In this document: positions 246-39,425 of the stretch, piece after piece
Layout of the letters: every line of letters starts with the position of its first letter
Numbering within the stretch: the first letter of the stretch is position 1
Assembly: GCA_013115145.1 (NCBI GenBank)
Contig: JAAPAO010000218.1
Span: 1-51,620 of the forward strand
Reading direction: 5' to 3'
Length of the DNA: 51,620 nt
Origin: Perkinsus chesapeaki ATCC PRA-425
Taxonomy: Eukaryota; Protista; Perkinsozoa
The notes under the pieces: model-generated
The model's database searches: none
Told to the model about the DNA's origin: nothing
Seen by the model: only the letters and a program-made list of their open reading frames with translations
Made by a program: the position numbers and the translations under genes

Positions 246-3236
246 TGCGGAATAGTACGACTGAGTATCTTGTACGTTATTAAATAATGGTTATCCCCTT
301 CCTTCATCTCAGGGCTATTGCAGATCGGGTATTCAGAGCTATTACGGAGAACGACAGCAAGTTCCGAGTTTATGTGGTAAGCGTGGTGCAGGCCGGGCCC
401 CCTGATTCACTGTGGGGAACTGTTCTCGACATTGTTCTCGGGGAACAATTGAAAAAATGCGCCCCTTTACTAGTTCTTTGAATTTGAAGCTTGTGAAACA
501 TATTTTCACTCAATAGATTTGCTAAGTATTTTCACTTGAGCGCCTCGATGTCATTGACAGAAAGTTGCATGGTTGCCGGCGTCTTGAATCGCGTAGACGT
601 TATGAAATTCAGAACAGAGAAGTCTCAGTCAGCTTTATTATTTAATCGTAGTAGGAGCTTGCAATTGAAACTATCACATAATGGGAAAGTAACTTACAGA
701 GGATATCTGCGTGTTTTGGGAGGTGGTCGCGAGCACTGCTCTTTTTCAGCTCCTACCGATGTTACCGGCATTCGAAGGTGAGAACTTGTGGACGGCGGAC
801 GCGTTCGTTTGCCGAATCACTATACATCTCCAGATGAGGGTAGGTCCAAAATGGAGATGCATCTTCGAAGAGGTGCTTTTAGTCGATCCATAGCTGCAAA
901 ACTTCCATTGTGCAAACGCTAAAGAGGAGGCTTATCGCTCGGCATAAGCAGGAACCTTTGGAGGCGCTAAAGGGGAAAGATGGTGAGCCACTGTGGGAGA
1001 AACCTACCGCATTTGGGTGTGGCGGAATATTAAAGAAATCTTTGGGATCACAAGGGCCTGTACCAATCTGGTACTGGTTGTCAACTCGTGGTACTGATGG
1101 GCTCCTAGGCAGTTGTCTAATTTGCCTAGGCCTGAAGTCACCCCTCAACGGTTGACAAGCGTTGCAATCTATAACACACACCTTCTTTTTCTTTGATTCG
1201 TCTGGGCCTTCGAGGAAGCGTTTTGTCAGTGTCGACTCGGGAGTTACTGGAGCAAGCCATTGAAGAAGTTATCAGGAGCCACATAGGCTTCTTTTGCTTG
1301 CGAACTGTATCTGATGGTTTTAAGGATGGCAGATTGAGGACAGAGCAAATGTAAGTGGCAGAGCACCGTTAGGTCTGGAGGAAAAAATTTCTTTATCGGG
1401 CCGAGTTATGAAATGTTGGAATAAACGTCGTTCTAGAAGTAAATTGAGTGCATTGGTGCCGCTAGTCGAGTTTGGAATCACGCAGAGCGCATATCTATGC
1501 TCTGATGCGGTCGATATGAACAGCACTAAGAGTCGTCGGGGAGCGTCGTGCCGTGAACGCTTGGGATGTTCACTGGTCGAGATCCACCTTCCCTCTCTGT
1601 TACAGTTACATTCACGCCAAGACTATGATAGTGGACGATTGCAAAGCAATTATTGGTTCCGCTAATATCAATGACCGAAGTATGGCAGGTGATCGAGATT
1701 CCGAGACTGCTGTAAGGAGACCAGAGCCTTAGCGGAGCGAAGCAGTTTTTTGGGCGTTTTTAGGTCCTTATTGAAGATGATATGGGAACGTCCTCGCCTT
1801 ATACCTTCGCTGGTAAGTCATTTGGTTGATGGCCCTTTCGGCTGTGTGTTAGATAGTCGTGAACTGTGAATAATAGGAAGTATATAGCCGCGTTGTCGGC
1901 ATGTCGGTCCTCTTTGGAAGGCGTATGAATGATGAATACGCAATTTCGGTATATTTTTGTGAGTTACTATCACAGTGTTTTGGTTATTAGTAGCTGCTAG
2001 CTTCAGGTTAGCATTTTGCTACTAAGGATGCTGATTGCTATATTGTCGTTGGTAAATCATGTTTCAGGTGACATGCGAACTCAACTTTGGAGGGAGCACT
2101 TTGGATTGCTGCAAGGTGTGATTGAAGACAGGCAGGAGAAGACCTTCGTAAGTGCTGCCGTGTGAGGTATTTCTCAACTCTTCGAATGCTCAGTAGGCGT
2201 GGAAATTCTCCACTTTTTCGACTCCTTGAAAAATTGATAGAAAAATGAATAAGAATCCCTTCTCCCATGTAAAAATTTTCCGTCCTATTGAAGAAATTTC
2301 TCACTTTCTGTGTGCGTTAAATTCGATAAGTATGGTGCGTGTTCGCAAATGTCGTGTCCCATCGCGGTTATTCCGTTGGCTTCGTCTCAGATCGATAACG
2401 TACTCCGCGATCCAACTAGTGATTCGTGTTGGAAAATGTGGCTTACCACAGCAGAGAGGAACATAGAGATCCTTCGAGAAGGGTTCCACGGAGTTTGGCC
2501 TGATAGCGAGATACGGTATGTTAAGCTATTATGTATCTTGCACGCATCAACCTCTGATCCGCTCCTAGGAACTGGAAGCAGTTTCATAGTGTCCTAGAGA
2601 ACCGGTCTAATCCTGAAGGAAAAGAAAAGGAGAAGGTCGTCAAAGGACTTAAAGGCTCCCGAGTGTTCCCGTACCCACTTGTAAGCCAAGCCTGATACCT
2701 CGGTTTGTTCGTTCGGTTTCTGGTGGAAAATTAATCTCTTTGAACCTGGCCCACTCGCCCGATGGGTGTTAACAGGGTTGAGCTCATTCGCTCTCAATTA
2801 TTGATCTGATATTATTTCCTGTATTATATGCGGACTAGTTCGATGCGGATATTATACCCTATAATGGTTGCTATCATAATTTATATCCCGGTTCTAATTG
2901 GGCTAAGTCAGTGTTAACATTACAGCATCTTGCCTTCTGGAAATCCTTTTTATATGAGTAGCCTTGGCGAGATTGCTATCGTTGTCCATGTTGAAGTGAT
3001 CGTCACTAACTGATGGTGAATTCCATCATCTGCAGCTTGTACTTTAAAGCCCGCAATCTGCGAGTATCTTACGGTAGAATGCTTACCTTTGTAAGTGCGC
3101 GCCTCAGTGACATTCGCTATAATATTTTTGCAACTGTTGGTTTTTATTTCTGCCTCAGGAGTTCCTGTGTGAAGAGGATATGACGGTTCCGGCTCCCACG
3201 TCCATCTCTCTAATGCCGAAGGAAATCTTCACTTAA
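246..3236 (+). CDS. Phospholipase D (PLD1/2-like), 3' portion; multi-exon, 5' end lies upstream of the window
   Basis: Spliced exons read [21 protein letters not shown] (313-377), [18 protein letters not shown]|[33 protein letters not shown] (HxKxxxxD motif near 1610), [33 protein letters not shown]|EFLCEEDM...MPKEIFT* (stop 3234-3236). These match conserved PLD C-terminal motifs. Confidence 0.93.
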
Positions 3237-23429: not shown

Positions 23430-24322
23430 TTCAGACTGGAAGACCAACGATTTGGCAGCGAAGACATACGGCGATTATACCTGAGTAAAACCGTTTGATC
23501 GGAATAACTCTCACGCTACAAAACGGCGGTGTCAGCAGTCTCTAGCTGATTGACTTAATAGGCTTTCGCTTTGAAGTCATTAGTGCCGCTCAAGTGTCTG
23601 CTTTATCGCTATAATTACTCACTCTTCACTAGCCAGCATTGATCTCTATACCAGTAACATCTTTCGAGCGCTGATCGATTCCACCGGGCGATTGCTCCGC
23701 CGTACTGGTTTGCCTTTTCCGTACAGTATCGTGCGTCTCTATTATTCCAGCCTCTATTATAGGTGTATCGAGGTCTATGTGGCATCTGTATAATAACAAG
23801 GGCCCTCCAGTAAGTAGTAGAATGGGGGAGAGGTATGGCAGTGGGTGTTGTTTGGTTGAAAGGCTATGTTGGGTATCGGCAGGCTTGCCGCTCGGAACGG
23901 TCGCTGATTCGGTGCCACCTTGGCTTCTTAGTAATACCTTAGTAGTCGTAGTGTGGATGGGCTTGCTCTAGTTATGAAGGGCTGGTCTGTATTTTTCTAG
24001 CAATCTTCCAAGCGGCTTTCTACGTTTTATTTTTGAGGTTATGAAGGGCTTTTTACATTCTATTGTTATTTTTTAGAGGGCGTTGTCAGTCTTTCAAAAG
24101 AATAATCTATATCCTGTCATAGATCATCCTATCGTTTTTTAATGAAGATCTTTCTACCATAGTAGATTTGTTGTCTACCATGACCTGTCACCGTATATAC
24201 TCTTCAATCGGGTTCTTTGTTGTTATTACCAATCACTCCAAGATGGTGTATCTGGTGGCCTTCACTCCCCGCGTCGCTAAGCTACAATTAATTACATGTT
24301 TTGTCAGTTGAACTTTTATTCA

Positions 24323-24974
24323 ATGCTTAGCAGTCTCTCCCGTACCGCTGCCTTCCCGACACTGCGGCGGTCCTTCCTTCCCCTAGTCAGACGCATCCGG
24401 CCCTTCTCAAGTAGCGCAGGTGTTTCGGCACCTTTATCCAGCGATGGTATCAGGTTTGGTATTTACCCGAGACCACGAGTGGATCTCCACCAACGACGAT
24501 CACGTTGCCACTATTGGCGTTAGCGACTTCGCTCAAGACGAGATCGGGGAGTTAGTGTAAGTTCCGTGGCTGCATAGGTTGTTCAATTGTGGTTCCTTTA
24601 GTTACGTAGATTTGCCGTCAGTCGGCTCGGTGTTCAACAAAGACGAAGTGCTTTGCACTTTAGAGAGCGTGAAGGCGGTCGAAGAGGTGTAGGCACCTTC
24701 GCTTTGGGACAACTGTATTTGTCCGTTAGGCTTTGTCCGCTTGACTCTGGCACAGTCGTGGAGACTAACATGGAGGTTGAGGAGACACCGGATCTGGTTA
24801 ATGCCGATCCAGAGCACGATGGCTGGCTCTTGAAGATGCAATACCAGTAAGAAACCCCTTCACGCTTGATAATTGCTATGGTGTGTTTTCAGCGGCTCGA
24901 TTGAGCCAGACGGAAAGAACTACTTCACTGGAGACGAGTATCACAAAGCGCACGAAGTTGGTGACGCCCAGTAA
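24323..24974 (+). CDS. GCSH: Glycine cleavage system H protein with N-terminal mitochondrial-type presequence
   Basis: Arg/Ser-rich MLSSLSRTAAFPTLRRSF; DHEWI, TIGVSDFAQDEIGELV|YVDLP, lipoyl site LESVKA, VNADPEHDGWLLKM; stop 24972-24974. Confidence 0.95.
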
Positions 24975-25537
24975 GATCTGATTTGACGATCGAAACAATC
25001 TCGAGGCCAGAACTGTTCAAAACCACAATTAACTAGTTCGTGTTTCTTCCCTTATTGTCGATAGTGCAAAAAAATATCAAATCGCGCCACCCACATTGGT
25101 GGAGTGGCGTACTAATTGTTGAGTTGTCCATAAAAGTGGAAGGCTAGAGGAATAACGGAGACATCAATGAAACGCTAGCCGAGCACGAAGGCGCGAGCCT
25201 GGTATGTAGACTTTGTCGCCACTAGCCTCGGGCACACAAAAGCATATCCAACTGTCCCGATGATTGTGATGCACGCATGCGCACGAGGGTGTCACGAAAA
25301 TGAAGTGAATAACTCGGAGCTTTTTGAGATAGAAGATGATATTAAGTGGTTCAATTGAGGGTTATTCATGCTATAAATGAGTAGAAACGGTTTTATGAAA
25401 CGGCTCGTCTAAAGGTCGATATCCTGCAAGATATGTGGTTATCGATTATTAGGGCGTAGCGAGATTATGTTTAGCGTTTCAAATTCATGGAAGCTGCGTG
25501 CTGCCCCGAGCACGGCCCCCGAAGAATTCAACCGACG

Positions 25538-26565
25538 ATGGCGACATCGAAGGTGTGTGGAATGTCAGACGCCAGTACTGAAACTGGTGCGGATATCAAC
25601 GTAAGGCTTGTCATGCCTCCGTGTGGTTTTCAAGCGTGATTTTGACGGGGCTTTACTCTAGTCGTGATTGTCATGATCACTTGTGTCCTCCTCGTTTTGT
25701 GGTATTGGTGGTGATGCCATTTTTAAGAGTGGTGATGGAAGTTTCGGCTTATTATTATCGGTTATTGCTGAGGGTCGCCTTCCCTGGGCTTCCTAGATGT
25801 TTTTTGTCCTCTTCTGCTCAGCCAAGCTTCGATCGCCACTCACCAGCTGCTGGACACTGTCTACTATCCGACTTTGAAGTGGATTTCCTATCTGGTCTGA
25901 TCTGTGACACCGGCTACTCCCTAGTAGAAGACAGCATGACCACCACCGCCCCAGTTCGTAAGAAGGCCCGTACCCCATCACTGCCGAAGGTAGACCTCAA
26001 CCTCATCATACCCTCTAGTCAAAGAAGGTCTTGTACTGCTACAACTAGTAAGTCTGAGGGTGCGCCAAGCAGCTCTTCAGCAGGGTCACATGATAGCACA
26101 CCTGAGAAGGTGTCTAGACGAGGAAGGAAGAAAACTGCTACTTCGTCCTCTGGTATGCCCGAGTTTGAGCGCAACGAGTATCGACGACTTGTGCAACATA
26201 TGGTACGTATGAACAAGGAGTTGGCAGCGCCCTTTATGAAGCCCGTTCCTAAATGGGTCCCTGGTTACTACGAGATGATCACTGTTCCCGTCGATATATC
26301 GATGATACTGAATCGGCTCGATTCTTGGTTCTACGGGTCACGGGCTGACTTTGAAGCTGACATGCGGCAGATGTTCGTCAACGCTTACACCTTCAATCAA
26401 CCAGGTTCTCTCGAGTACGACTACGCCCTCGAGTTGCATTCTATCTTCAACACTATGATGACAACGGCTCTTGATAAAGTGTTGCAGCATATGGCTGAGG
26501 AGCACGAGAGAGAAGTGCAGTCGGCCGTCAGTAGCGGTCGTAAACGTAAGAGACGATCGACATGA
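25538..26565 (+). CDS. Single-bromodomain protein
   Basis: FMKPVPKWVPGYYEMITVPVDISMI...ADMRQMFVNAYTFNQPGSLEY with the conserved Asn; basic C-terminus GRKRKRRST. Probable first exon 25538-25600; second acceptor position uncertain. Confidence 0.88.
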
Positions 26566-26981
26566 AAGGCTTGAAGCCTCGGTCGATATGTTATATAGTG
26601 CTTGCCGACTATTTTTCCTTTCACCACGATTGATTACTGCTGGCTAGTCGCCCTAGGGCTGGAGTTCGCCCTTAATTGCACATTTGTTTAACTCGCTCTG
26701 TAGTATTGGTATTCTTTTTGCAACTCTTGACTGAGGCTTTAGTTAGTGAATAAGAGATCTCCTCCATACCACCAACATGCAATGGCGCGTCACGCAGCCA
26801 TCTGCACGCAAAAGCAAGTCGTTTCTCGATGTCCGCCTGCTCAAAGAACTACGTGATAGAACACGTTTCAGACCTAACCTTGGTGACAACTGTTTAACAC
26901 AAGATACGTCGCATTCAGGGCCAGTACTAAATGGTCTGTAATATGCATGACATTGGTAAGGTTTAAACCATGTGTTCGATG

Positions 26982-28310
26982 TCACAAAAACTGTGAGACG
27001 CGCCTCACAGGAGCACCTGGTGCACCTGCAAAGGAATTGTGCGTCCCAGATTCAAGTACGGCAAGTCAGCCTTACCACCACTTCCTAGTCCAATGTAGCT
27101 CATTAGGGCGTCGAATGACGACTGCTGTCCATCGTGTTGTTCTTGGTCAGACGGGAGCATAGAGGCTGACCCTACTGAATACCTCACACCAGTGGCTTCC
27201 GATGGTCTGCCCCCGGCTGCCTGAGAATGTGAAACATAAAGTTCAAGGCTATCGGTGGGAGATGAGCTCTACCTCGTCTCCCTCGCGCTGGCCATTAGAA
27301 CGGTATAGTGGAGGCATCTGGGTTCTCATTTGGTCTCGAAGGTCCTGCTCCTGCTCCCGAACCTAGAACCAGAAACAGTATTCACCAATCTGAAAAGCAT
27401 GAAGGTACTGCTCGTCGATGGTCTTGAAACAATGTCGCGTTGTCCATAGCTCCATTGAAGTTCGGGTCTCGCAGGAGGAGTTGGCGCAGTCGCTGAAGCT
27501 CATAATTCCTGTGGAAGTAAGCGTATAAGGAATGAACGTTACTGTTGCGAACCTACAGTGTGTCTCTTTCGAAACGGAGCTGGTCATTTTCAACTTGTTG
27601 GAGAGTTATCTGACGTTGCTGCTCTCGTAGCCGCTTCAATATCTAACACTAGAGATCCACCTGCTGTCACACAACAACTCACCCTTTTGTCACAGAGACC
27701 CGACACATCCGAAATAGCGTGTTGGTACTCCATTGCGGTTTCATCTATTTTTCGGGACAGTCGCCTGAAAGACGCTAAAGCGCTGCCTCGTAGCTCGGTC
27801 TACCTCTCAATCTGCTGGAGGCGCTGGAAACTATCCCAAAACTCTTGAAGACGGAGGTCCAGGCCTTCCTTGAGGATCTTTATGTTAGGGTCGATACTAG
27901 ACGCCCCGTCAGGCAACTACAAAGCACGATTAATGGGGATAATGTGAGAAAGCACATACCCTCATTTTCCCTTCTTCGTCCATATAAGGCTCGAGGAGTA
28001 TTGCCAACCTCTCTTTATCACTCACCAACGTGCTGTTGGCTGCGGCAATCTCGGCGAGTTGCTCCTGGTATCTGCCGTTTACGTGTTGAGGTTGTTTAAA
28101 GTTGACGACTTGAATGTTACGTTCGGACAAGGTTCAGTATTTCCTCGTCTCTAGAGAGCGGTGAGCTCGATTCTGGAAAGTACGGTGCGGAAGGTAACAT
28201 CACAACGATAACAGCAGACGGCTCTTTGTCGACTTCACTCGGGGAAATAACGCAACCACACAGGACAGGGTACCAGCTAGACGACAAAGGCGCGATAAGC
28301 CGCTGAACAT
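26982..28310 (-). CDS. Coiled-coil protein of unknown function, multi-exon
   Basis: ATG 28310 after a taacag acceptor. In-phase exons give EEILNLVRT|YQEQLAEIAAAN, LQEFWDSFQRLQQIER|RLSRKIDET, ILKRLREQQRQITLQQVENDQLRFERDTL and final ...APVRRVSQFL*. Confidence 0.6.
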
Positions 28311-28388
28311 GCAACTGTTAAGAAGTCAATTATCACTAAGGTAGGAGTATGTTACAAAGGTACAAGCAAGCAATTGGTAAAGGGATGG

Positions 28389-31300
28389 TCAATCTCTAGC
28401 AGAAGTGAACCTGTCTTTTAGGGATTGAAGGTACTGGAAGACAACCGTCACAGCCGCTCTAGTTGGATCGTCATCGAATTTGTCCGGGTGCCACAATGCC
28501 TGACGTCATAGAAAAATTACCAACACCGTCAACATTAGCCCCACCTGAAGTTGTCTGAACGCCTTCCGCCTCGTGTCAACATCCACGCTATCGATGTGGC
28601 ATTGAGTCCATTCCAAGATATCTGCCTCAACCTGGGCGGGGGGAGATGATAGAGTTGGGGTAGTCAGGAACTCCTCACCTCATGTATCGGGTCCCTGCCC
28701 GGCGCAATAAGGGATGGCCGTCGCTTGGGGTTGATCCTATCGGGTATAGCCAGATCTCCTGTGCCTGGAAGAGTGGAACTAGAAGCACTGTGCGCAGTGG
28801 AGGGCTCTGTACCGCCGTCGAATGACCACATGTGGCTCTTTCGCTTCTCCGGTCGAGATGATCCCAATACTTCGCTGTGATGGCGTACCTGATGGCACAA
28901 TTACCAATAAATTAGTTGCTAATCCTCGATAGAAAGAGTGTGCTTCCGGACTCTGCGTTGTTACCCAGCGGCTCCCTCCAAGGGACGGTGCCTTAAGCCT
29001 TGACGGCCTCCTGTCATGCACTGTCTTGCGGCCGCCGTTCCTATGGTGCGCAGGCCTGAACGGAACCTGCCATCTCTACCATGAAGACCTTCCGAGAATC
29101 ACCGAGAGAAAGTCTCCCCATGGACGGTGTTCCTGTATTTGCTGCTGCTGAAAGAGCTACCGATCGGATCGTAATCTGTACCTGTCGCATCACACTTCCA
29201 CACGATACCATACACTAGACTCACTTGCTGTGTTGTCAAAGGGGCTGTCCGTTCTCCCTGTGGCCTCAGGCGTGATGGGTGTTGATGGTTTGCCGCTCTC
29301 TGATAGATCCGATGGCGTCAGTTGCGGTTTACTTCGGACCGTTGAACCGCGTGCATAACCGATAGGATCCTGAGACTTCCTAATAGAGATCCAGTCGAAC
29401 AGGGGTTCACCTCCTCTGCCGCGATACTAGCCAGGTGCTTAGCGCGGTGCCTCCTCCACAACCAAAGTCCAACAGCCGCAATCAATACCACAACGCCGGA
29501 TATAGCCGAGGCCAATATTATCAGCATGGAAGAGCCTCCGCTGACTGGCGCAGGACCTGACACATAGAATGCACGACTCACTCGGCGCGCCGAAATGGTA
29601 CTCGTAGTTGTCAGATTTTCTTGTTGCTGCCGGGCTTCCCACCAAGCCGGCGCCACTCCAATATCAACACCGGACACAACAAGCTGCGTAGTAGATGGAA
29701 CGTTGTCTTTGAAATTAATGAACTGAGGTGCGGACCTGCACCTTGGAATCACACCACCGACCGAGCTCATTAGAAATGGCGTACCCGGGCGGCTTTGTCG
29801 AGTAATGCTCTTTGATGACGGTGCGCGTGCTGGGCGTACCCAAGATGGCACTAATCCCTAAGCAGTATGGCGATTTGGCAACTGAGGTATAATAAGGCCT
29901 ACCCCCTCTGGTTCGCACAATAAGAGACATCTCGCCAACGCTCAACCGCTGAGTTGTAACCGCTATGTTAAGCAGGACGTGCTTGGTGAGAGTGCTGGCT
30001 CTAGCTGTCACCACAGGCACGGCAGATACCTGCGAGAAGTGGATGCTCAGGAGACTGTCGACGATCCTTACCATGTCTAGTGTGAATCTCCCGGTCGGCT
30101 GAGTAATGTTCGACAGTAGTGATTCTGTGCCTAAGTTATTGACAGAAAATATAAATAAGCGACTGCGACGCGGAAGCTGTCTACGCAGGAAGCTGGCTGA
30201 GTCTGCTAGGTAATCTCGAAGGCTGTATGCAATCTCCTCTGAGTAGTAAGAGTCGTCCGGTGGAGCCAGCAACTACGGCGATGACTGGATAAAGAGTATG
30301 ATATTAGAAAGCATACCGTGAGTGTGACGAGGATCGGCCCGCCGGTGATGGCGTCAACGTCACGAAGCTCCAGGCGCAGGAAAGGCGCTGTGGATGACAT
30401 CGACAGGGAAATGCTGAGGAAACACAATACTGGGTATTTGGCGAGCAGCGAGCCTACCTCCGGAGCAGTGTGATGGCGGCAGCCATCTGTGTGATGTCGG
30501 ACACAACCGGGATGCCAACCACTAGAGTCACCTGTACAAGATACAGTAGAGGGTGTATGCGAAAAGAGGTAGCACGTACATCCAAAGAGAGATGATGGGA
30601 GCATGCTGTCTGTGAAGTGGAGCCATCCGTCCAGCCTAGATCACAGGTACCTGTCACATGGGATGACTCAGAGGAGCTCTAGTTAGGTGTGCTACATTCG
30701 GTTGCTGCTAGTATCCAGTCTTCTAAGGATAGACCGATAGTCCCAGTTGTCGACGATACAGAGCAGGTGCTGTGCTCCGGACCTGAACCAACCAAGTGAC
30801 AAGCCACGCGGCAGCTGCTGCTGCCCACTTACACTGTCGTGACTGGCAAGGGTCGCTAGGTGGAGGGCTCTCGCACCACGCGCCACTATAGCCATCGGTG
30901 CATTGGCACCCCAGCTTTCCGGTCTGAGCATCCATCACAGAGCATCGGCCATGCAGACCGCAGTCGACGGTATGGCACAGGTCACTGGTCGGCTCGCAGA
31001 GCATCTGGAGGAAGCGGGCTGGACAACGCATCTCAGCTGGTGGCTCACGAAGTCGCTCTCGTCACCGTTGTTCCAACCTGTCACCTCTTTTTTCATCACG
31101 GATAGATTACAGAGACCGGTCCTGCTGTCATACCTGACAAACGCACCGTCCCGATAGCACCGGCATCGTCTGGAGGCAAGCTTACTCAATATTCTCGCAC
31201 GCCCCGAAACTCAGGCAGAAGAGCTTGCACTCTTCCAAGGACGGCAGTGTTCTGCTCTGATGATCGTTACCTGAGCAATCATTGGCCCAGTTGAGGCTCT

Positions 31301-34300
31301 GGCGCGGCCTACCTGAGACGCCGCTGTTCGGCCAGCACTTCCAACCGATCCCACAGAACTGCCAGGTGTCTGCGGGGAAGAAGTCATCGTGCCAGACGGC
31401 AGCTCCTTTGCATTTGCACCACTCCCGATCCTGGAGACAACTGGAGTCCCTCTGGTGGCGACCGAAGGTCCTACCGACGAACCCTCTGTGAACTTGCAGC
31501 AGCCTCGGTTACTTCTTGTCGAACACCGTGCTCCTGAACGGAATGGATACTCCTGAGAACAGTGCAGCTAGCAGTCACCTCTGTAGGTCCAGTCCTCTTC
31601 ACATACGCACGCGCTGACGTTCACAGGGCTGCCGGGCCTGGCGCTGGTCACGTCTATCGGCGAGCCTGCGGCCTCCAGACAGTGTCGATGAGTGTACCTA
31701 TGCAGCGACATTCATGCTGAATCACTCAGTGCTCGCTTACGGGTCCGTGCCGCACTGCCTCTCGCAGTCAGCTCCTATGACGCCTTCGCTGCACAAGCAG
31801 GTCACAGTGTCTCCCGAGCCTAAATACAAGTGACCGAGCAGTGCCGAACCTGCTTACTTTGGCAAGTCCCATAGTCGCCACAGGCAACATCCGAGCCGCT
31901 GCAGCCATCCGAGCCGGTGCCCCCACCGTCCGTGGTGTTTGTGGGGGTAGGCGTCACCGGCGTCTGAGTCAATGAGCCATGTGGTCCCAAGCTAGTGAGC
32001 TCGGCTGCTCACCCTGATGTTGAGCGAGCTGCAGTCAGCGCCTTGGTAGCCCCGATAGCAGACGCACTGGCCGTGATGGCAGGTACCTGGCATTGCAGCA
32101 ATCACATCCCGAGCCTTCGGGGTTTCTCACCACTGGAACATTCGACCGAGCTCCACCCGGATCCTTCCGGGTCGCAAAGATTCCCGTAGTTGGCGACTCT
32201 GTTGGGCAACTGAGAGGGACGAGGGTAGATAGGAGTCGGAGAGGAAGCTTACGGGGTTCGCTCGAAAGCTGTCGACTGGAAGATTGACAAGGACGTCGTG
32301 GACAGTTGTGAACTTCAGACCATCGAAACGGTCAACGCTCACCCAGCCAGAGGAAGGCCCATCTGAGTGAAAGATGTTTCCAAGGAAGCACAGAAGCCTG
32401 AGCCGACCTCCTAGAACTCGGAAGCAACGGACAGTCGCCAGGGAGGAGAACACGGCAATCGAGTAGGAAATACAGGCGGCAGGCGGAGTTCCTGAGCAGG
32501 TTGAATGGGTCCAACGGCAGAGAGCGAGACCCACTATAAGAAGGCTCGAGCTCATCCATGCACCCGTCATCTGAGTACCAGAGAACGCTGCACGCCCCTA
32601 CGGCACGCCAGACTCTGTTGAACCTGGCAAGAAATACGAGAGTCGTCTAAGAAAATCGGTGCCTACGTCTCTTGTGTGGTAAGGAAAAACCCGCCGTCGG
32701 CGGAAGCCGTGTCGATCTCAACTGGGCGCTCAGTGCCAACGCTGCCGGTCCCTAGGGCGGCCCGGCCCTCTCCGGTGTCACCCCAACACACGACTGTCCC
32801 AGATGCATCAGTCTAAAGCGAAAATGCCATAGTAGAAATGAAGTCGAGGCTCACCAAGCATGCGTTGCTTTCACCACAAGTAAGCTCCGCTGGCACTGTC
32901 CCAGTGGTCAGGGTTGATGTGAGAAGGTGGGCGCCTGGAACGGCACAGATCACTGGCAGGTTATGCAAGGGCTTACCAGAGCTCAGAGAGGCGGCTCCGA
33001 GCTGACCATTAGTATTGCCACCCGCACAGGTTAACTGGTCATCGCCGTGGATGAAGCAGACGAAGTCTCGACCGCAACACATGTGGGAGACATCGTTGGC
33101 AGGAAATTGTGTGAGGGTCTGGTAGATAGCTGAGAGGATAAAAGACATGCTGAACACCACCATGCAGAGTCCGAGTGGGCAAACAGCCAGACAAATGGAG
33201 CACGAACTCGCAATGTGCATACGAGCCTTTCCACGAGTACAGGACATAGCATTATAAATACATGTTATATAGTATAACCCATGCAGGAGGATCTATGGTA
33301 TAAAAGCGTATAGGAGATACGGCGGGTAGAAAGGAATATCAGCTGGCCAACAGAGGAGTTTAGAGATGGATACCGACCTACCACTATCAAAGACACCAGG
33401 TACGTAGCCTGCACACTGAAGTGCACCATCGTGCCCCAGGACACATGTGAAGGTGAGCCCAGTACAAATATCTGCTATGTGCTGAGACGGCATCAATGCA
33501 GCTGGAAGGTTGTCTCCTGAGCGAAGGCTCCGTTGTAGGTGGTGGGGGAAGCCCTACCCATATGGGAGATATGTCTCCCTCTCGAGAGAACATCGCCGTA
33601 TCCGAGCTGACCGTAGTTGTTGAACCCCCAGCATTTCAAGATATCTCGTCCAGTGGTGCCATAGCCATCTGACAAATGCGTATTCTCAAAAAAGTGAATG
33701 CTTACAGATTTCCCATCTTGCGCAATACGAAAGCCCCACAGAAATCTTCAGAATCCAAGTGCTGTAATGCCTGCCCGGAACTCTCACCTACAACGGCGCA
33801 AAAGTGGTAGTATGCTCCTGCTATTTGTTTGACTGGAAGGTCGGAGGTGCCCAAGTTAACGAATAGGGCATCCTCGAAGCCTCGGGAGAGGTAAGACATC
33901 CCCAGTCCAAGTGCCTGAGCCGAGGGAGGTCGCAAGTTCGATCCCGAGCGCACGCAACTCGACTGTATGGACCCTACCCCGTCTTTGTTGCTTCCCCAGC
34001 ACTTCACCTTGTGCTCTATCAAGATACAGTCCGTCACGCGCCCAGTGACAACTTGCTCCACATTGGTCTCAATTATCCTGACCAAAGACCATGCCCCACC
34101 GTGTAAAGCTATACGGGAGCCTGTCTACGGGAGCTGCTCTCCAGTGCCGCCTAAGGACTTCGACCACTCCTCCCCTACAGGCCCGCCGGCCTGCAGGTCA
34201 TCGGCGAGGCCCCAACACTTCAGTCCGCCTGAGAATGCACTCTAGTGCTAATGGTCGCTAAACTGGGACGTACCCTTGACGGCGCCGATGCCATCCACAG

Positions 34301-37300
34301 TTACACATAGGTGGTCGACACCTGCACTGACGCTGGTAACGGACAGGGGTTGCGAGGCTTCGAGGACCTTCGAGTCGGAAATAGTATCAAGCGGCAGGGA
34401 GTCATCGTGCTCACTCGTAGCGATAGATTGAAAACATGGATGCCCGTGGGTAGCTTGAATTCTAAATGACGGAACGCTAATTGATTTGCGGCTCCGAGGG
34501 AGCAGGTGAGCACCGCCATAGACCTGCAAAGAGGCATCGGTATGGGTGCCGTTATGCAGTGAATAAGAGCTCTTACGCTCCCTGCCATTGCACAAGACTA
34601 TGGCCAGATACTGGACACGATACGGTTCGTCCAGAGGAGCAACGGGACTCGCTGGGGCAGAGGGTTACGTGGAAAACGCTGGCAGCGACATCAGAGGCGG
34701 AGATTAGTAAGGATACCTGTAAAAAGGTATTGGATAGGAGAGATAAGAGCGGCTTGCTACCTCAGATACGAGAGCCGGTTTGCCGAGGTCCACTGCTGCT
34801 ACACAGTGGCTTCCCACTGTAGCGCCCACGGCCCAGGCTCTGAGGCGGGCAAGAATGTGATAGTTAAGTAGCTCTCAGGTGACGCAGTTAATGCGGAAGG
34901 ATCAGCGCTTAGTGTAGTTGGTTTAGGAACGATGTGGAGAGGCTGCAAGTTGCGGGTGAATTCCGCAACGTGCTGACCTAGCACACAAAGTATAATGGAC
35001 TTACGTTGTGACATCATCATCTGAAGCATCATTGACGGTACCGGTACACTCGGTTGTCGGGGAGAGAATGGATTTCACGACCCTCGAAGACCCGGGTGAC
35101 GTCACTTTGTAGAAGGCTATGTAACCCGAACGAACGGTGGTGCACGTGACGAAATCCGTGCCTGTCGGTGAAAGCACGTCTGATCCAGCAAAGCCAACCG
35201 CCCCTACTGGAAGTGCTGAAGCATGCTCCGTCACTCATGCGGATGCTGACCGCCCCGCACGAGGGCGACTCCAAACAGGCATCGAGACAACCATACCCTG
35301 ACGGCGAGAGGGTGCAGTCAGCCCAATTGGTAAATGGTACCAGTGACGCCTGACATCCTCGCTCTCTGGACACCGCATTGCTCGCAGTTAACACACGGGG
35401 CCAGGCCCATTCTGGAGCTGTAACCCTTCATGTGCACGCACGAAGCAGTGGTGGCTCCCTAACAAGTGGGTGGACAATGGCTCAGATGAACCACAACGGC
35501 GTACTTCTACGACGCTGCCGAGCCGACACTTGTGGAAGGAACCGGCGCCGTCGCAGTCCAAGTCGTACACTCCTCCGCAGTTCAAATCGTCTGTACATTC
35601 ATCCGTCGCTTGCGTCAATGAGCTGTACTCCGTACCGTATCTAATATAAATACCGAATACACAGGGCTTCCTTACATTCTAGACCCTTACCGTGCGCCTG
35701 TTGGGCAGTAAGAGCCGAGTACGCTGGCGAAGCTCGCATTTCCTGTCACGTCATCGACACCTGGTTTTCGACCTGCAACACAGTTAGTTGGCAAGGTGCA
35801 GTATGGCTTCGACCGTGGCTCACCGATGTCCACCGCTTTAATGCTTGAGGCGTGCGCAATAACACTGCTTCCGACAGAGCCGTACCGGAGCTGCCCGTAT
35901 CTGTCACTCATTTGTCTCGTTGGCACTTAGTATTGATAGTTACTCATTCCGTGTGCCCCAACACTTGAGCTCCATCGTTGGCGTTATAGCACAGCCCCAG
36001 TTATCCCTCAGTGACATCTTCGGCAGTATCGACTTACGAAGTGAATTCACAGGAACTGAGACACGGAGGACTGCTGTGGGTAAATATGGACGGGAGTCTC
36101 ACTTGTAGCACGGCCCAAGGCTCGCATACGCCGCTCGTTGCCATTACTGGTATCGGTCGCTTGCCAGTGGACTTGTATGAAGGAGCCCCACGGGGGGTCC
36201 TCTGAACGAGAAAAACAAGCAATGACATTGTGGAAATGCATCGGTATAACCAAGCTCAAATGCCAACTTATAAGCGGTTCTATGGTGTAACGGTTAGCAC
36301 TCCAGACTCTGAATCTGGCGATCTGGGTTCAAATCCCGGTAGAACCTTTTCGAGTCGAATGAAAATTTGTGACAAAAATCTACAGCTTATTGCAAAAGTT
36401 AGTTTTTGCTTATTTCAGCACCCACACTGCTATAACTTTCATTCGGTGTTCCCAAGTGGAGCCAGACCGAGCCTCATGAGCTTATGTCTGCCCCTACCTT
36501 GAAACCTCTTCGGGTTCCCATCGACCAGCTGAACCGCTGCTTTCACTTCCTCGACTGGTATACCGAACGCAACCGCCAACCTCAGTTGTAAATCCGCAAA
36601 ACTGAGGGATGGTAATATGTCTACGGCAGTGAGCCGGCAATTGAGGGTTCTTACGACCGCTTCATCTCCGCTGAGTCTTGGCACCACTCCGCCGAATACT
36701 GCTGTAAAACTTCGACGTTATACACCGATACGGAGGTGTCCACTTTTCTGAGGAGTCGGGAGTCCGCAGATATCACGCGCCTCGCAATGCGTAGCGATCG
36801 GGTATTCCTTCAGTAACGACTGCTCTGCGACGATAGTTTATTGACTCCGGGGAAGCACTGTGATTTTCTTCAGCAACACAATCCTTACTGTGGTCTGACG
36901 CAGAGGTTTCCCTCTCGTGATAGGCCGGCTGCGCATGTGTCGGCACAAGACCCCATGCCGGAGATGGTAGAAGTGACGGAAGTACTATCGTCCGTGAGAT
37001 CTTGGCACAAGTAGTATCTGCAATAGCGTGCACTCTGAGCATCAATGAACCACGAACGAAGCATCCTGTCAGCCGTAACCTAGTCGCGACTTTGCTGGGT
37101 TCGCCAAGTCTGACCCAATACATTGAGCCATTGCATCCGAAGCATTTCAACGTATCTCTTTAGGGACTTGTCGCTTCTCCCAATGGTTTCGACAGATTTT
37201 CAAGCCTTGTTTCACCTGTCAAGCCATGCGTGCCTAGCAATTCCACTTCTAGATTTAGGGCTGCATATTCCCGGCTTGCTCGGGTCTATATCCTCCGCTC

Positions 37301-37470
37301 CCAGCTGATAGAACAGCACCAGTACACCAAAGACAACAAATAACGATATGTTCAGTGGGCTAGGGAAAGGGTTATCTTGGCGTTAAGTAAACTACACAAC
37401 ACCCATCTGGACCATCGACCAAGTATATCCCATATTCAATTGAAAAGTTCGAAGACACCATCCATGGAAA
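28389..37470 (-). CDS. Very large predicted type I membrane protein: RCC1-like repeats, Cys-rich/EGF-like modules, one TM, disordered tail, C-terminal HPD-containing partial J-domain; 5' end may extend to about 38548
   Basis: RCC1-like units (GVDHLCVTVDG, KVKCWGSNKDG, ILKCWGFNNYGQLGYGD, CCGRDFVCFI...GGNTNGQLG, VVCWGDTGEG; 32700-34330 and ~35950). EGF-like CGLHGRC...CQCTDGYSGAWCE (~30880-30980). TM IILASAISGVVVLIAAVGLWLW-RRHR (~29460-29525). Tail RRKAFRQLQ|ALWHPDKFDDD...VVFQYLQSLKDRF; stop at 28389. Many, but not all, junctions were checked for phase. Confidence 0.7.
36276..36347 (+). tRNA. tRNA-Gln (anticodon CTG)
   Basis: 72 nt cloverleaf GGTTCTA...CCAGA-CT-CTG-AA-TCTGG...GGTTCAAATCC...TAGAACC-T, followed by a TTTT terminator. 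Confidence 0.97.
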
Positions 37471-37508: not shown

Positions 37509-37580
37509 GGTTCTATGGTGTAACGGTTAGCACTCCAGACTCTGAATCTGGCGATCTGGGTTCAAATCCCGGTAGAACCT
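37509..37580 (+). tRNA. tRNA-Gln (anticodon CTG), identical second copy
   Basis: Same 72 nt sequence as 36276-36347; no adjacent T4 run. Confidence 0.96.
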
Positions 37581-38548: not shown

Positions 38549-38905
38549 GCCAGTAAAGTGGAAGGCCAGCTCGAAATATTGCACGAAAATTGCAAGAAAT
38601 TCCAAAATGGGCCCTGCGCAGATCCGCGCTGAGCAAAATCGATCAGGTGATCGATAGGTCCTCGCCAAAAGCAGGAACAGAGACCAACGTCAGGGTGGAC
38701 TTGGTAATAAGGGGGTTATGGCTTAATCTGAGGGACGTTGCTCTCTTGCTCGTCGTCTAACTGTAGTGGCCTTCCTTGACTTCGTTATCCGTCGTTCTTG
38801 TACGTTAAATTCAAAGGATCACATCGCTCGATCATGTGTAAAATTTGCGTTTTATTGGGTGGTTGTAAATTGATTATTATAATCGTTTTATTGTGTTTAG
38901 GAACC

Positions 38906-39425
<520 letters not shown>

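Follow-up and report, generated by a model that had tools for sequence, protein, structure and literature searches.

What does a surface receptor do with a cytosolic tail that ends like a co-chaperone? This question is raised by a gene of Perkinsus chesapeaki ATCC PRA-425 that lies on contig JAAPAO010000218.1, of which we analysed positions 1 to 51,620 (referred to here as the window). The gene occupies the minus strand from ~37.4 kb down to position 28389 and corresponds to NCBI FOL47_003724. A first reading made from the DNA letters alone (the sequence-only reading) had described it as a receptor-like protein with a C-terminal module resembling a J domain. Our best explanation, to which we give a probability of roughly 55%, is that the gene encodes a type I membrane protein of ~1,800 residues with a divergent J-type C-terminus, i.e., a membrane-tethered class C J-protein.

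The Receptor Gene and the Layout of Its Tail

The spliced protein was examined through database records. For the window gene this is the P. chesapeaki entry "hypothetical protein FOL47_003724" (P0017, 2041 residues), and for Perkinsus olseni three orthologues from three assemblies, namely the full-length P0005 (KAF4694843.1, 1787 residues), P0007 and P0016. The window's own tail sequence is present in P0017, which identifies that record as the public model of the receptor gene. A HMMER search of the whole library with the 185-residue open reading frame adjoining the membrane helix returned one protein, a partial P. olseni record whose 90% cluster includes the full-length P0005 and P0007, and a search restricted to the tail recovered P0016 and P0017. 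Using tblastn, residues 12-1787 of P0005 map to window positions 36749-28392. The public labels of the receptor are hypothetical or "EGF-like domain-containing", and a J domain is absent from the records. The exons and introns of the window were compared with a P. olseni locus, L002, which served as the reference. In the order of translation, the tail region is laid out as follows.

29601-29557, minus strand: 45-nt intron before the membrane-helix exon; P0017 joins ...NLTTTS to PAPVSGG...
29411..29556, minus strand: exon with the membrane helix MLIIL...GLWLW (29527-29456) and RRHRAKH (29455-29435), running to ...AAEE; exon end AEE/GT at 29411
29370..29410, minus strand: tail intron 1, 41 nt, GTGAAC..TCTCAG, phase 0; the L002 counterpart has 42 nt and 46% identity
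29225..29369, minus strand: tail exon DPIGYARGSTVRSKPQ...SPFDNTA; matches P0017 and P0005, 69% DNA identity to L002
29182..29224, minus strand: tail intron 2, 43 nt, GTGAGT..CGACAG, phase 1; 47% identity to L002
29103..29181, minus strand: tail exon (S)TDYDPIGSSF...HGETFS(R); 72% identity to L002
29056..29102, minus strand: tail intron 3, 47 nt, GTGATT..GTTCAG, phase 2; 45% identity to L002
28965..29055, minus strand: tail exon PAHHRNGG...SRLKAPSLGGSRW; matches P0017
28889..28964, minus strand: tail intron 4, 76 nt, GTAACA..CATCAG, phase 0; position and phase as in L002
28813..28888, minus strand: tail exon VRHHSEVLGSSRPEKRKSHMWSFDG; 68% identity to L002
28765..28812, minus strand: seventh intron, 48 nt, GTACAG..TTCCAG, in frame and stop-free; 35% identity to L002
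28679..28764, minus strand: tail exon GTGDLAIPD.INPKRRPSLIAPG.DP, the most conserved linker block
28632..28678, minus strand: tail intron 5, 47 nt, GTGAGG..GCCCAG, phase 0; 36% identity to L002
28545..28631, minus strand: J-like exon A, with helix I EADILEWTQCH and helix II RRKAFRQLQ, from the codon comparison and the AlphaFold helices
28500..28544, minus strand: tail intron 6, 45 nt, GTGGGG..CGTCAG, with an in-frame TGA, inside the J-like domain; 33% identity to L002
28389..28499, minus strand: J-like exon B, with the ALW-HPD-K loop, helix III AAVTVVFQYLQSLK and a short last helix; Pfam DnaJ aligns here

Tail intron 6 falls directly before ALW-HPD, and the joined frame reads VEADILEW...RRKAFRQLQ/ALWHPDKFDDDP...FQYLQSLKDRFTSARD, then TGA (28391-28389), which gives the C-terminus ...SLKDRFTSARD. 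The tail has an identical layout and is spliced alike in P0005, P0007, P0016 and P0017; the P. olseni orthologues have the same membrane helix, the same basic stop-transfer signal and a tail ending ...ALWHPDKFDDDP...LQSLK... before the stop. Much of this layout had been anticipated. The membrane helix followed by the basic stop-transfer RRHR is indeed read on the minus strand at 29527-29435, and six introns (GT-AG, 41-76 nt) lie where the sequence-only reading had put them, all shared with P. olseni in position and phase. The seventh intron, 28812-28765, had been translated as 16 extra residues because it is in frame and has no stop. The end coordinate of 28389 was correct, but the quoted C-terminus, KDRF followed by the stop, had dropped five residues, the real end being TSARD.

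The C-Terminal Module Resembles a J Domain

A helix-HPD-helix arrangement is the Hsp70-activating core of J domains, and its basic helix II contacts Hsp70. We carried out the J-domain tests on residues 1700-1787 of P0005 and on a five-row alignment of the tail (A2). The window encodes the motif WHPDK, which recurs unchanged in P0005, P0007, P0016 and P0017, and the wider pattern K-A-F-R-x-L...W-HPD-K is the same in both species despite many synonymous changes. Helix II, RRKAFRQLQ, carries three basic residues and aligns with KKAYRKLAL of DNAJB8 and KKRFRQLSIL of DNAJC8. Pfam DnaJ (PF00226) was the sole family match in the last 88 residues (18.2 bits, E 0.0026); the alignment covers profile positions 18-52 of 63, with helix I outside, and the family was matched in four of the five alignment rows, including the piece of P0017 derived from the window. 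In NCBIfam, HscB alone was matched, in its J region (E 0.017). In a sequence search of the PDB, 17 of 18 weak matches were J proteins, with DNAJB8 as the best (E 0.046), and these matches span helix II, the HPD motif and the start of helix III, e.g., KKAYRKLALRWHPDK against RRKAFRQLQALWHPDK. A profile built from five sequences matched DNAJC8 in the PDB (E 0.015) together with noise and did not better the single sequence. J-like exons A and B, searched singly against Pfam and PDB sequences, gave no match, as each is too short. The helix II pattern next to the HPD motif, together with the family-specific matches, speaks against an occurrence of this motif by chance alone.

The predicted structure points in the same direction. 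The AlphaFold model of P0005:1700-1787 has a mean predicted local distance difference test (pLDDT) value of 72 and a predicted template modelling score of 0.59, with helix I at residues 20-36 (unusually long), helix II at 41-54, helix III at 63-78 and a last helix of ~5 residues. The HPD motif (56-58) is placed in the loop between the antiparallel helices II and III, where the pLDDT is 75-84. When this model was compared with the PDB using Foldseek, ranks 1-7 were all J domains, the best being PFA0660w with a template modelling (TM) score of 0.60 by target and 2.9 Å over 59 columns. Re-alignment with VIA gave Z 6.7 for the J domain of sacsin, 5.0 for P58IPK (29% identity) and 4.5 for auxilin (18% identity). 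Among the 30 nearest shapes in the ESM Atlas, nine of the ten family sets shown carry PF00226, at TM scores of 0.51-0.60 and root-mean-square deviations of 2.4-2.9 Å over ~60 residues, and the feature search of the same resource returned DnaJ clusters at a weak 0.90. Every family-specific signal from these sequence and model comparisons is thus of the J-type co-chaperone kind, and none points to anything else.

A number of observations weigh against a J-type reading of the receptor, and two more, concerning RNA and the N-terminus, are given with those subjects below. The Pfam score of 18.2 lies below the gathering cut-off of 27.8 bits, the Foldseek E values are at least 0.7, and the VIA Z scores of designed and unrelated helical bundles equal those of the J domains, so this measure does not discriminate. 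The other four of the five AlphaFold models reach a pLDDT of only ~50. In the model, helix IV is nearly absent (~5 residues), and the Pfam alignment omits helix I. Every J-domain match is sub-threshold, and since helix II and the HPD loop form the shared core of all of them, the matches are not independent.

These same weaknesses, i.e., the score under the gathering cut-off, the Z scores shared with unrelated bundles, the missing helix IV and the atypically long helix I, favour the most serious alternative, in which the exon model is correct but the module is only a J-like helical protein-binding domain that does not activate Hsp70, the HPD motif being kept for another reason or by descent. 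Relatives outside the two Perkinsus species, which could define the family, were also not found in the word-index and metagenome searches. However, the HPD motif and the K-A-F-R-x-L...W-HPD-K pattern are identical across the species amid synonymous changes, and the family-level matches in four libraries are all to J-type co-chaperones, which leaves this alternative unlikely. The J-domain-like end proposed from the DNA alone is therefore retained in part: the family-specific signals of sequence and shape are all J-type and the HPD loop is seen in the AlphaFold model, but none of these signals is above threshold. We consider it quite probable that the C-terminal module is homologous to J domains, and are slightly inclined to believe that it has also retained the Hsp70-activating function.

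The J-Like Exons Are Probably Joined to the Receptor Frame

The reading of the tail as a J-type protein depends on splice junctions that rest on species comparison and annotation. Each of the seven introns is matched in L002 by one of equal position and phase, and all are GT-AG in both species. The eight exons are 60-76% identical in DNA between the window and L002 and the seven introns 33-55%; J-like exons A and B, which align without gaps, are the highest of the eight at 75% and 76%. The 28812-28765 intron is spliced out in P0017 (giving SFDGGTGDL) and at the same site in P0005, and it is 35% identical between the species compared with 68-70% in the adjoining exons. With the junctions marked by a slash, P0005 reads AEE/DPIVFARG...NTAS/TSDD.../...SRWV/RHHGG...VDDG/TGDLAIP and continues ...AE/VKEDILEW...QLQ/ALWHPDKFDDDPSK...LQSLKQMFTSDKE to its stop. 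In P. olseni, the receptor frame terminates at the equivalent codon.

Codon by codon, the last three exons (93 codons) contain 34 identical, 42 synonymous-only and 17 residue-changing codons between the window and L002, and the differences are distributed 15/10/49 over codon positions 1/2/3. The counts for identical, synonymous-only and residue-changing codons are 9, 15 and 4 for the exon at 28679-28764 (28 codons), 12, 11 and 6 for J-like exon A (29 codons) and 13, 16 and 7 for J-like exon B (36 codons). Because 42 of the 93 codons differ synonymously only and the differences are spread over the codon positions in this way, the comparison indicates that the frame of the tail is under clear purifying selection up to the shared stop.

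No public RNA run covers this stretch, and two small runs labelled P. chesapeaki gave no reads on 28000-31500. This lack of RNA support for the junctions is a point for a second alternative, in which the receptor and the tail exons are not spliced together in vivo, either because the receptor stops early by intron retention or because these exons belong to a separate trans-spliced mRNA that starts from the Met in ...KSHMWS.... Perkinsus does use spliced-leader trans-splicing, and read-through of intron 1 or intron 3 gives early stops; a retained intron 3 (29102-29056) would put a TGA after ...GETFSR. Against this, the frame, phase and positions of the seven introns are kept in two species with a divergence biased to third positions, the J-like exons lack a start codon, and the exon gaps are only 41-76 nt, all of which makes such an arrangement improbable. 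A separate gene formed by the J-like exons themselves was considered too and is implausible because there is no Met in the P. chesapeaki exons and the gaps between them are just 45-47 nt.

Five of the seven tail introns start with GTG. For comparison, the validated introns of the ubiquitin-L40 and GcvH genes in this region have GTA-type donors.

The 3' End of the Gene and the Downstream Neighbour

The public model of the P. chesapeaki gene ends differently. In P0017, a donor at 28434 (GTACCT) cuts the last exon short behind ...VVFQ, and an intron of 363 nt (28434-28072, minus strand) leads to an acceptor at 28072 within the next gene, which adds ~255 residues of a coiled-coil protein. The 13 codons past the donor at 28434 are kept as protein in P. 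olseni, and within them the stretch YLQSLK differs at six of six codons by synonymous changes only. Beyond the receptor stop, the first exon of the neighbour is found.

28120..28200, minus strand: downstream coiled-coil gene, first exon MLPSAP...NLVRT with the ATG at 28200; ATG and peptide conserved at L002:11674

In P. olseni, L002:11674 is the annotated start of a separate gene of 281 residues, and the receptor and the downstream gene are annotated separately in three assemblies of this species. The P0017 fusion is probably an annotation artefact, because the intron that it invokes would remove 13 conserved codons, the shared stop and the ATG exon of the downstream gene (28200-28120), and because P. 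olseni has two genes in this place. That the NCBI model is nevertheless right, with an internal J-like module and a truncated helix III, is the least probable of the alternatives: GT and AG are present at 28434 and 28072, the 2041-residue protein is annotated thus, and a tRNA-bearing intron of ~300 nt elsewhere in the receptor gene makes long introns possible, but the conserved codons with their synonymous-only YLQSLK, the shared stop, the conserved ATG exon (window 28200, L002 11674) and the two-gene annotation of three P. olseni assemblies all speak against it. The finding thus also amends the annotation, in that the P. chesapeaki record appears to join two genes.

Next downstream, a conserved coiled-coil protein of ~281 residues that belongs to no Pfam family is encoded (window 27000-28200, minus strand; L002 11674-12917), and its gene begins 188 nt past the receptor stop codon. 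L002 is syntenic with the window around the receptor, and the shared gene order comprises ubiquitin-L40, the receptor, the coiled-coil gene, GcvH and a bromodomain gene (window 24300-26600 and 38800-39420; L002).

The Outer Part and Membrane Topology

The tail belongs to a large protein, most of which is encoded upstream of the membrane helix.

29557..37382, minus strand: rest of the receptor gene, with RCC1-like propeller, PAN and EGF modules; from tblastn, Pfam and tblastx against L002

On P0005, Pfam detected an RCC1-like propeller (WD40_RLD 9.4e-30, RCC1_2 1.7e-15, RCC1 3.2e-12), EGF_Teneurin (2e-8) and, weakly, PAN (0.0023), and Pfam on the open reading frames of the window agrees with this set of outer domains. 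The RCC1/EGF ectodomain of the sequence-only reading is thus borne out, with PAN as an addition.

A hydropathy scan of P0017 showed one strong peak, at residues 1531-1561. The membrane helix is followed on its C-terminal side by the basic flank RRHRAKH, and its N-terminal flank has no basic residues. Because the basic flank lies only on the C-terminal side, the tail should be cytosolic, and the outer part is most likely extracellular or lumenal. A signal peptide was not found at either annotated N-terminus, in the P. chesapeaki or the P. olseni model, and the annotated start codons of the two species lie at different positions. Comparison of the window with L002 by tblastx revealed conserved coding sequence upstream of both annotated starts, at 37079-36888 and 37382-37218 (minus strand), the L002 counterparts being 2589-2753 and 2905-3042. 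The block at 37382-37218 encodes a hydrophobic stretch and then AEDIDPSKPG.CSP, which is like a signal peptide with its cleavage region. No in-frame ATG could be placed for this conserved hydrophobic block, which keeps both the start of the protein and its type I topology putative.

The same region contains two tRNA-Gln(CTG) genes on the plus strand, at 36276-36347 and 37509-37580. The former is antisense within the unusually long (~300 nt) intron of the receptor gene, and the latter is in the 5' region of the receptor and is 85-92% conserved in P. olseni (L002 ~2324-2412).

The Putative Cytosolic Linker

Between the membrane helix and the J-like module lies a linker of 174 residues. The tail had been described as rich in Ser and Pro; both are abundant, and so are Arg and Gly. 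We infer that the linker is disordered and forms a flexible leash under the membrane. It contains short conserved blocks, the strongest of which, GTGDLAIPD.INPKRRPSLIAPG.DP, immediately precedes the J-like module; the two species agree at 24 of its 28 residues, with 15 codon changes that are synonymous only. Within this block, RRPS reads as a site of the type recognized by basophilic kinases. The block may be a regulatory site, a docking site or an N-terminal extension of the J-like domain.

Distribution and Relation to Known Membrane J-Proteins

In word-index searches with the tail, all matching proteins of 983-3127 residues belonged to P. olseni or P. chesapeaki, and there were no matches in the length range of 268-854 residues. 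Residues 560-990 of the protein P0001 matched nothing but P0001 itself. A scan of the JGI metagenomes for WHPDKFD and AAVTVVFQ yielded no relative that could be confirmed. No relatives of the tail were therefore found outside Perkinsus within these searches, which covered two length ranges, the word index and the JGI metagenomes, and did not directly cover P. marinus and other myzozoans. In the literature, we found no description of a Perkinsus membrane J-protein or of a J domain at the C-terminus of a type I receptor. The combination of such an ectodomain with a J-like tail had been called unusual, and this stands insofar as no such architecture was met in protein, metagenome or literature searches, with the proviso that the J part is sub-threshold. 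We class the receptor with its J-like tail as a new architecture among membrane-anchored J-proteins; the gene itself is already public.

The nearest functional analogy is found in DNAJC22 and its Drosophila counterpart Wurst, a plasma-membrane J-protein in clathrin-mediated endocytosis (PMC5597180). DNAJC22/Wurst, with its J domain, and the Perkinsus protein, with its J-like one, are both integral to the membrane and carry this module at the C-terminus. In Wurst, the J domain is canonical and faces the cytosol, and the protein is polytopic and has no large ectodomain. In contrast, the protein from Perkinsus crosses the membrane once, its outer part amounts to ~1,500 residues and its J-like domain scores below threshold. 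Beyond the J motif, no sequence relationship between the two was detected.

Auxilin and GAK resemble the Perkinsus protein in that a long flexible region precedes the J (or J-like) domain at the very end of the chain, and the extra N-terminal helix that precedes the core in auxilin is reminiscent of the long helix I of our model. Auxilin, however, is a soluble protein whose recruitment depends on regions that bind clathrin, AP2 and lipids, and no such motifs were recognized in the Perkinsus linker. Pam18/Tim14 (DNAJC19) combines one membrane helix with a minimal C-terminal J domain and activates Hsp70 at the membrane. It is small, resides in the mitochondrial inner membrane and faces the matrix, whereas the Perkinsus protein is distinguished by its huge N-terminal part, which is adhesin-like, and by its 174-residue linker. 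None of Wurst, auxilin and Pam18/Tim14 has a large ectodomain, unlike the Perkinsus receptor. Compared with the PF00226 domains of DNAJB8, DNAJC8, sacsin and PFA0660w, the Perkinsus module shares K-A-[FY]-R-x-L...W-HPD-K and a hydrophobic helix III but differs in that helix I is outside the Pfam alignment, helix IV is vestigial and the score is below the cut-off.

For the outer part, apicomplexan micronemal adhesins offer a comparison: they contain PAN/apple and EGF modules, one membrane helix and a short acidic tail that is linked to the motility apparatus. Both they and the Perkinsus protein are myzozoan type I proteins with PAN-like and EGF-like outer modules, a likeness of architecture alone. 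To our knowledge, no micronemal adhesin has a J domain or an RCC1-like propeller.

A Proposed Mechanism and Its Implications

In the mechanism that we propose, the last ~65 residues, split by an intron, would constitute a divergent J-type domain with an intact HPD motif and a vestigial helix IV. This J-like tip would be held below the membrane on a leash of ~175 residues, so that the tail would work as a class C J-protein tethered to the membrane. Cytosolic Hsp70 in its ATP-bound state would be docked by helix II and the HPD loop and thereby made to hydrolyse its ATP, after which it would clamp clients near the receptor tail. Candidate clients would be coat or adaptor assemblies in endocytosis and recycling, or the disordered tail of the receptor itself.

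J-proteins determine where and on what Hsp70 acts, and the known membrane-anchored members of the family operate at translocons, in endoplasmic reticulum or mitochondrial membranes or, in the case of Wurst, at endocytic sites. If the reading of the Perkinsus protein proposed here is true, a J domain at the tip of a cytosolic tail would represent a new way of placing Hsp70 beneath a surface receptor. Among the major pathogens of oysters and clams are Perkinsus species, and type I proteins that bear PAN and EGF modules are a class used by related parasites for attachment to the host. It is tempting, though no more than tentative, to speculate that Perkinsus has a surface adhesin or receptor with its own Hsp70-activating domain, which would couple ligand binding or clustering on the outside to local Hsp70 action; if true, this would be, for instance, a self-contained device for uncoating or recycling, or a chaperone-based signalling switch.

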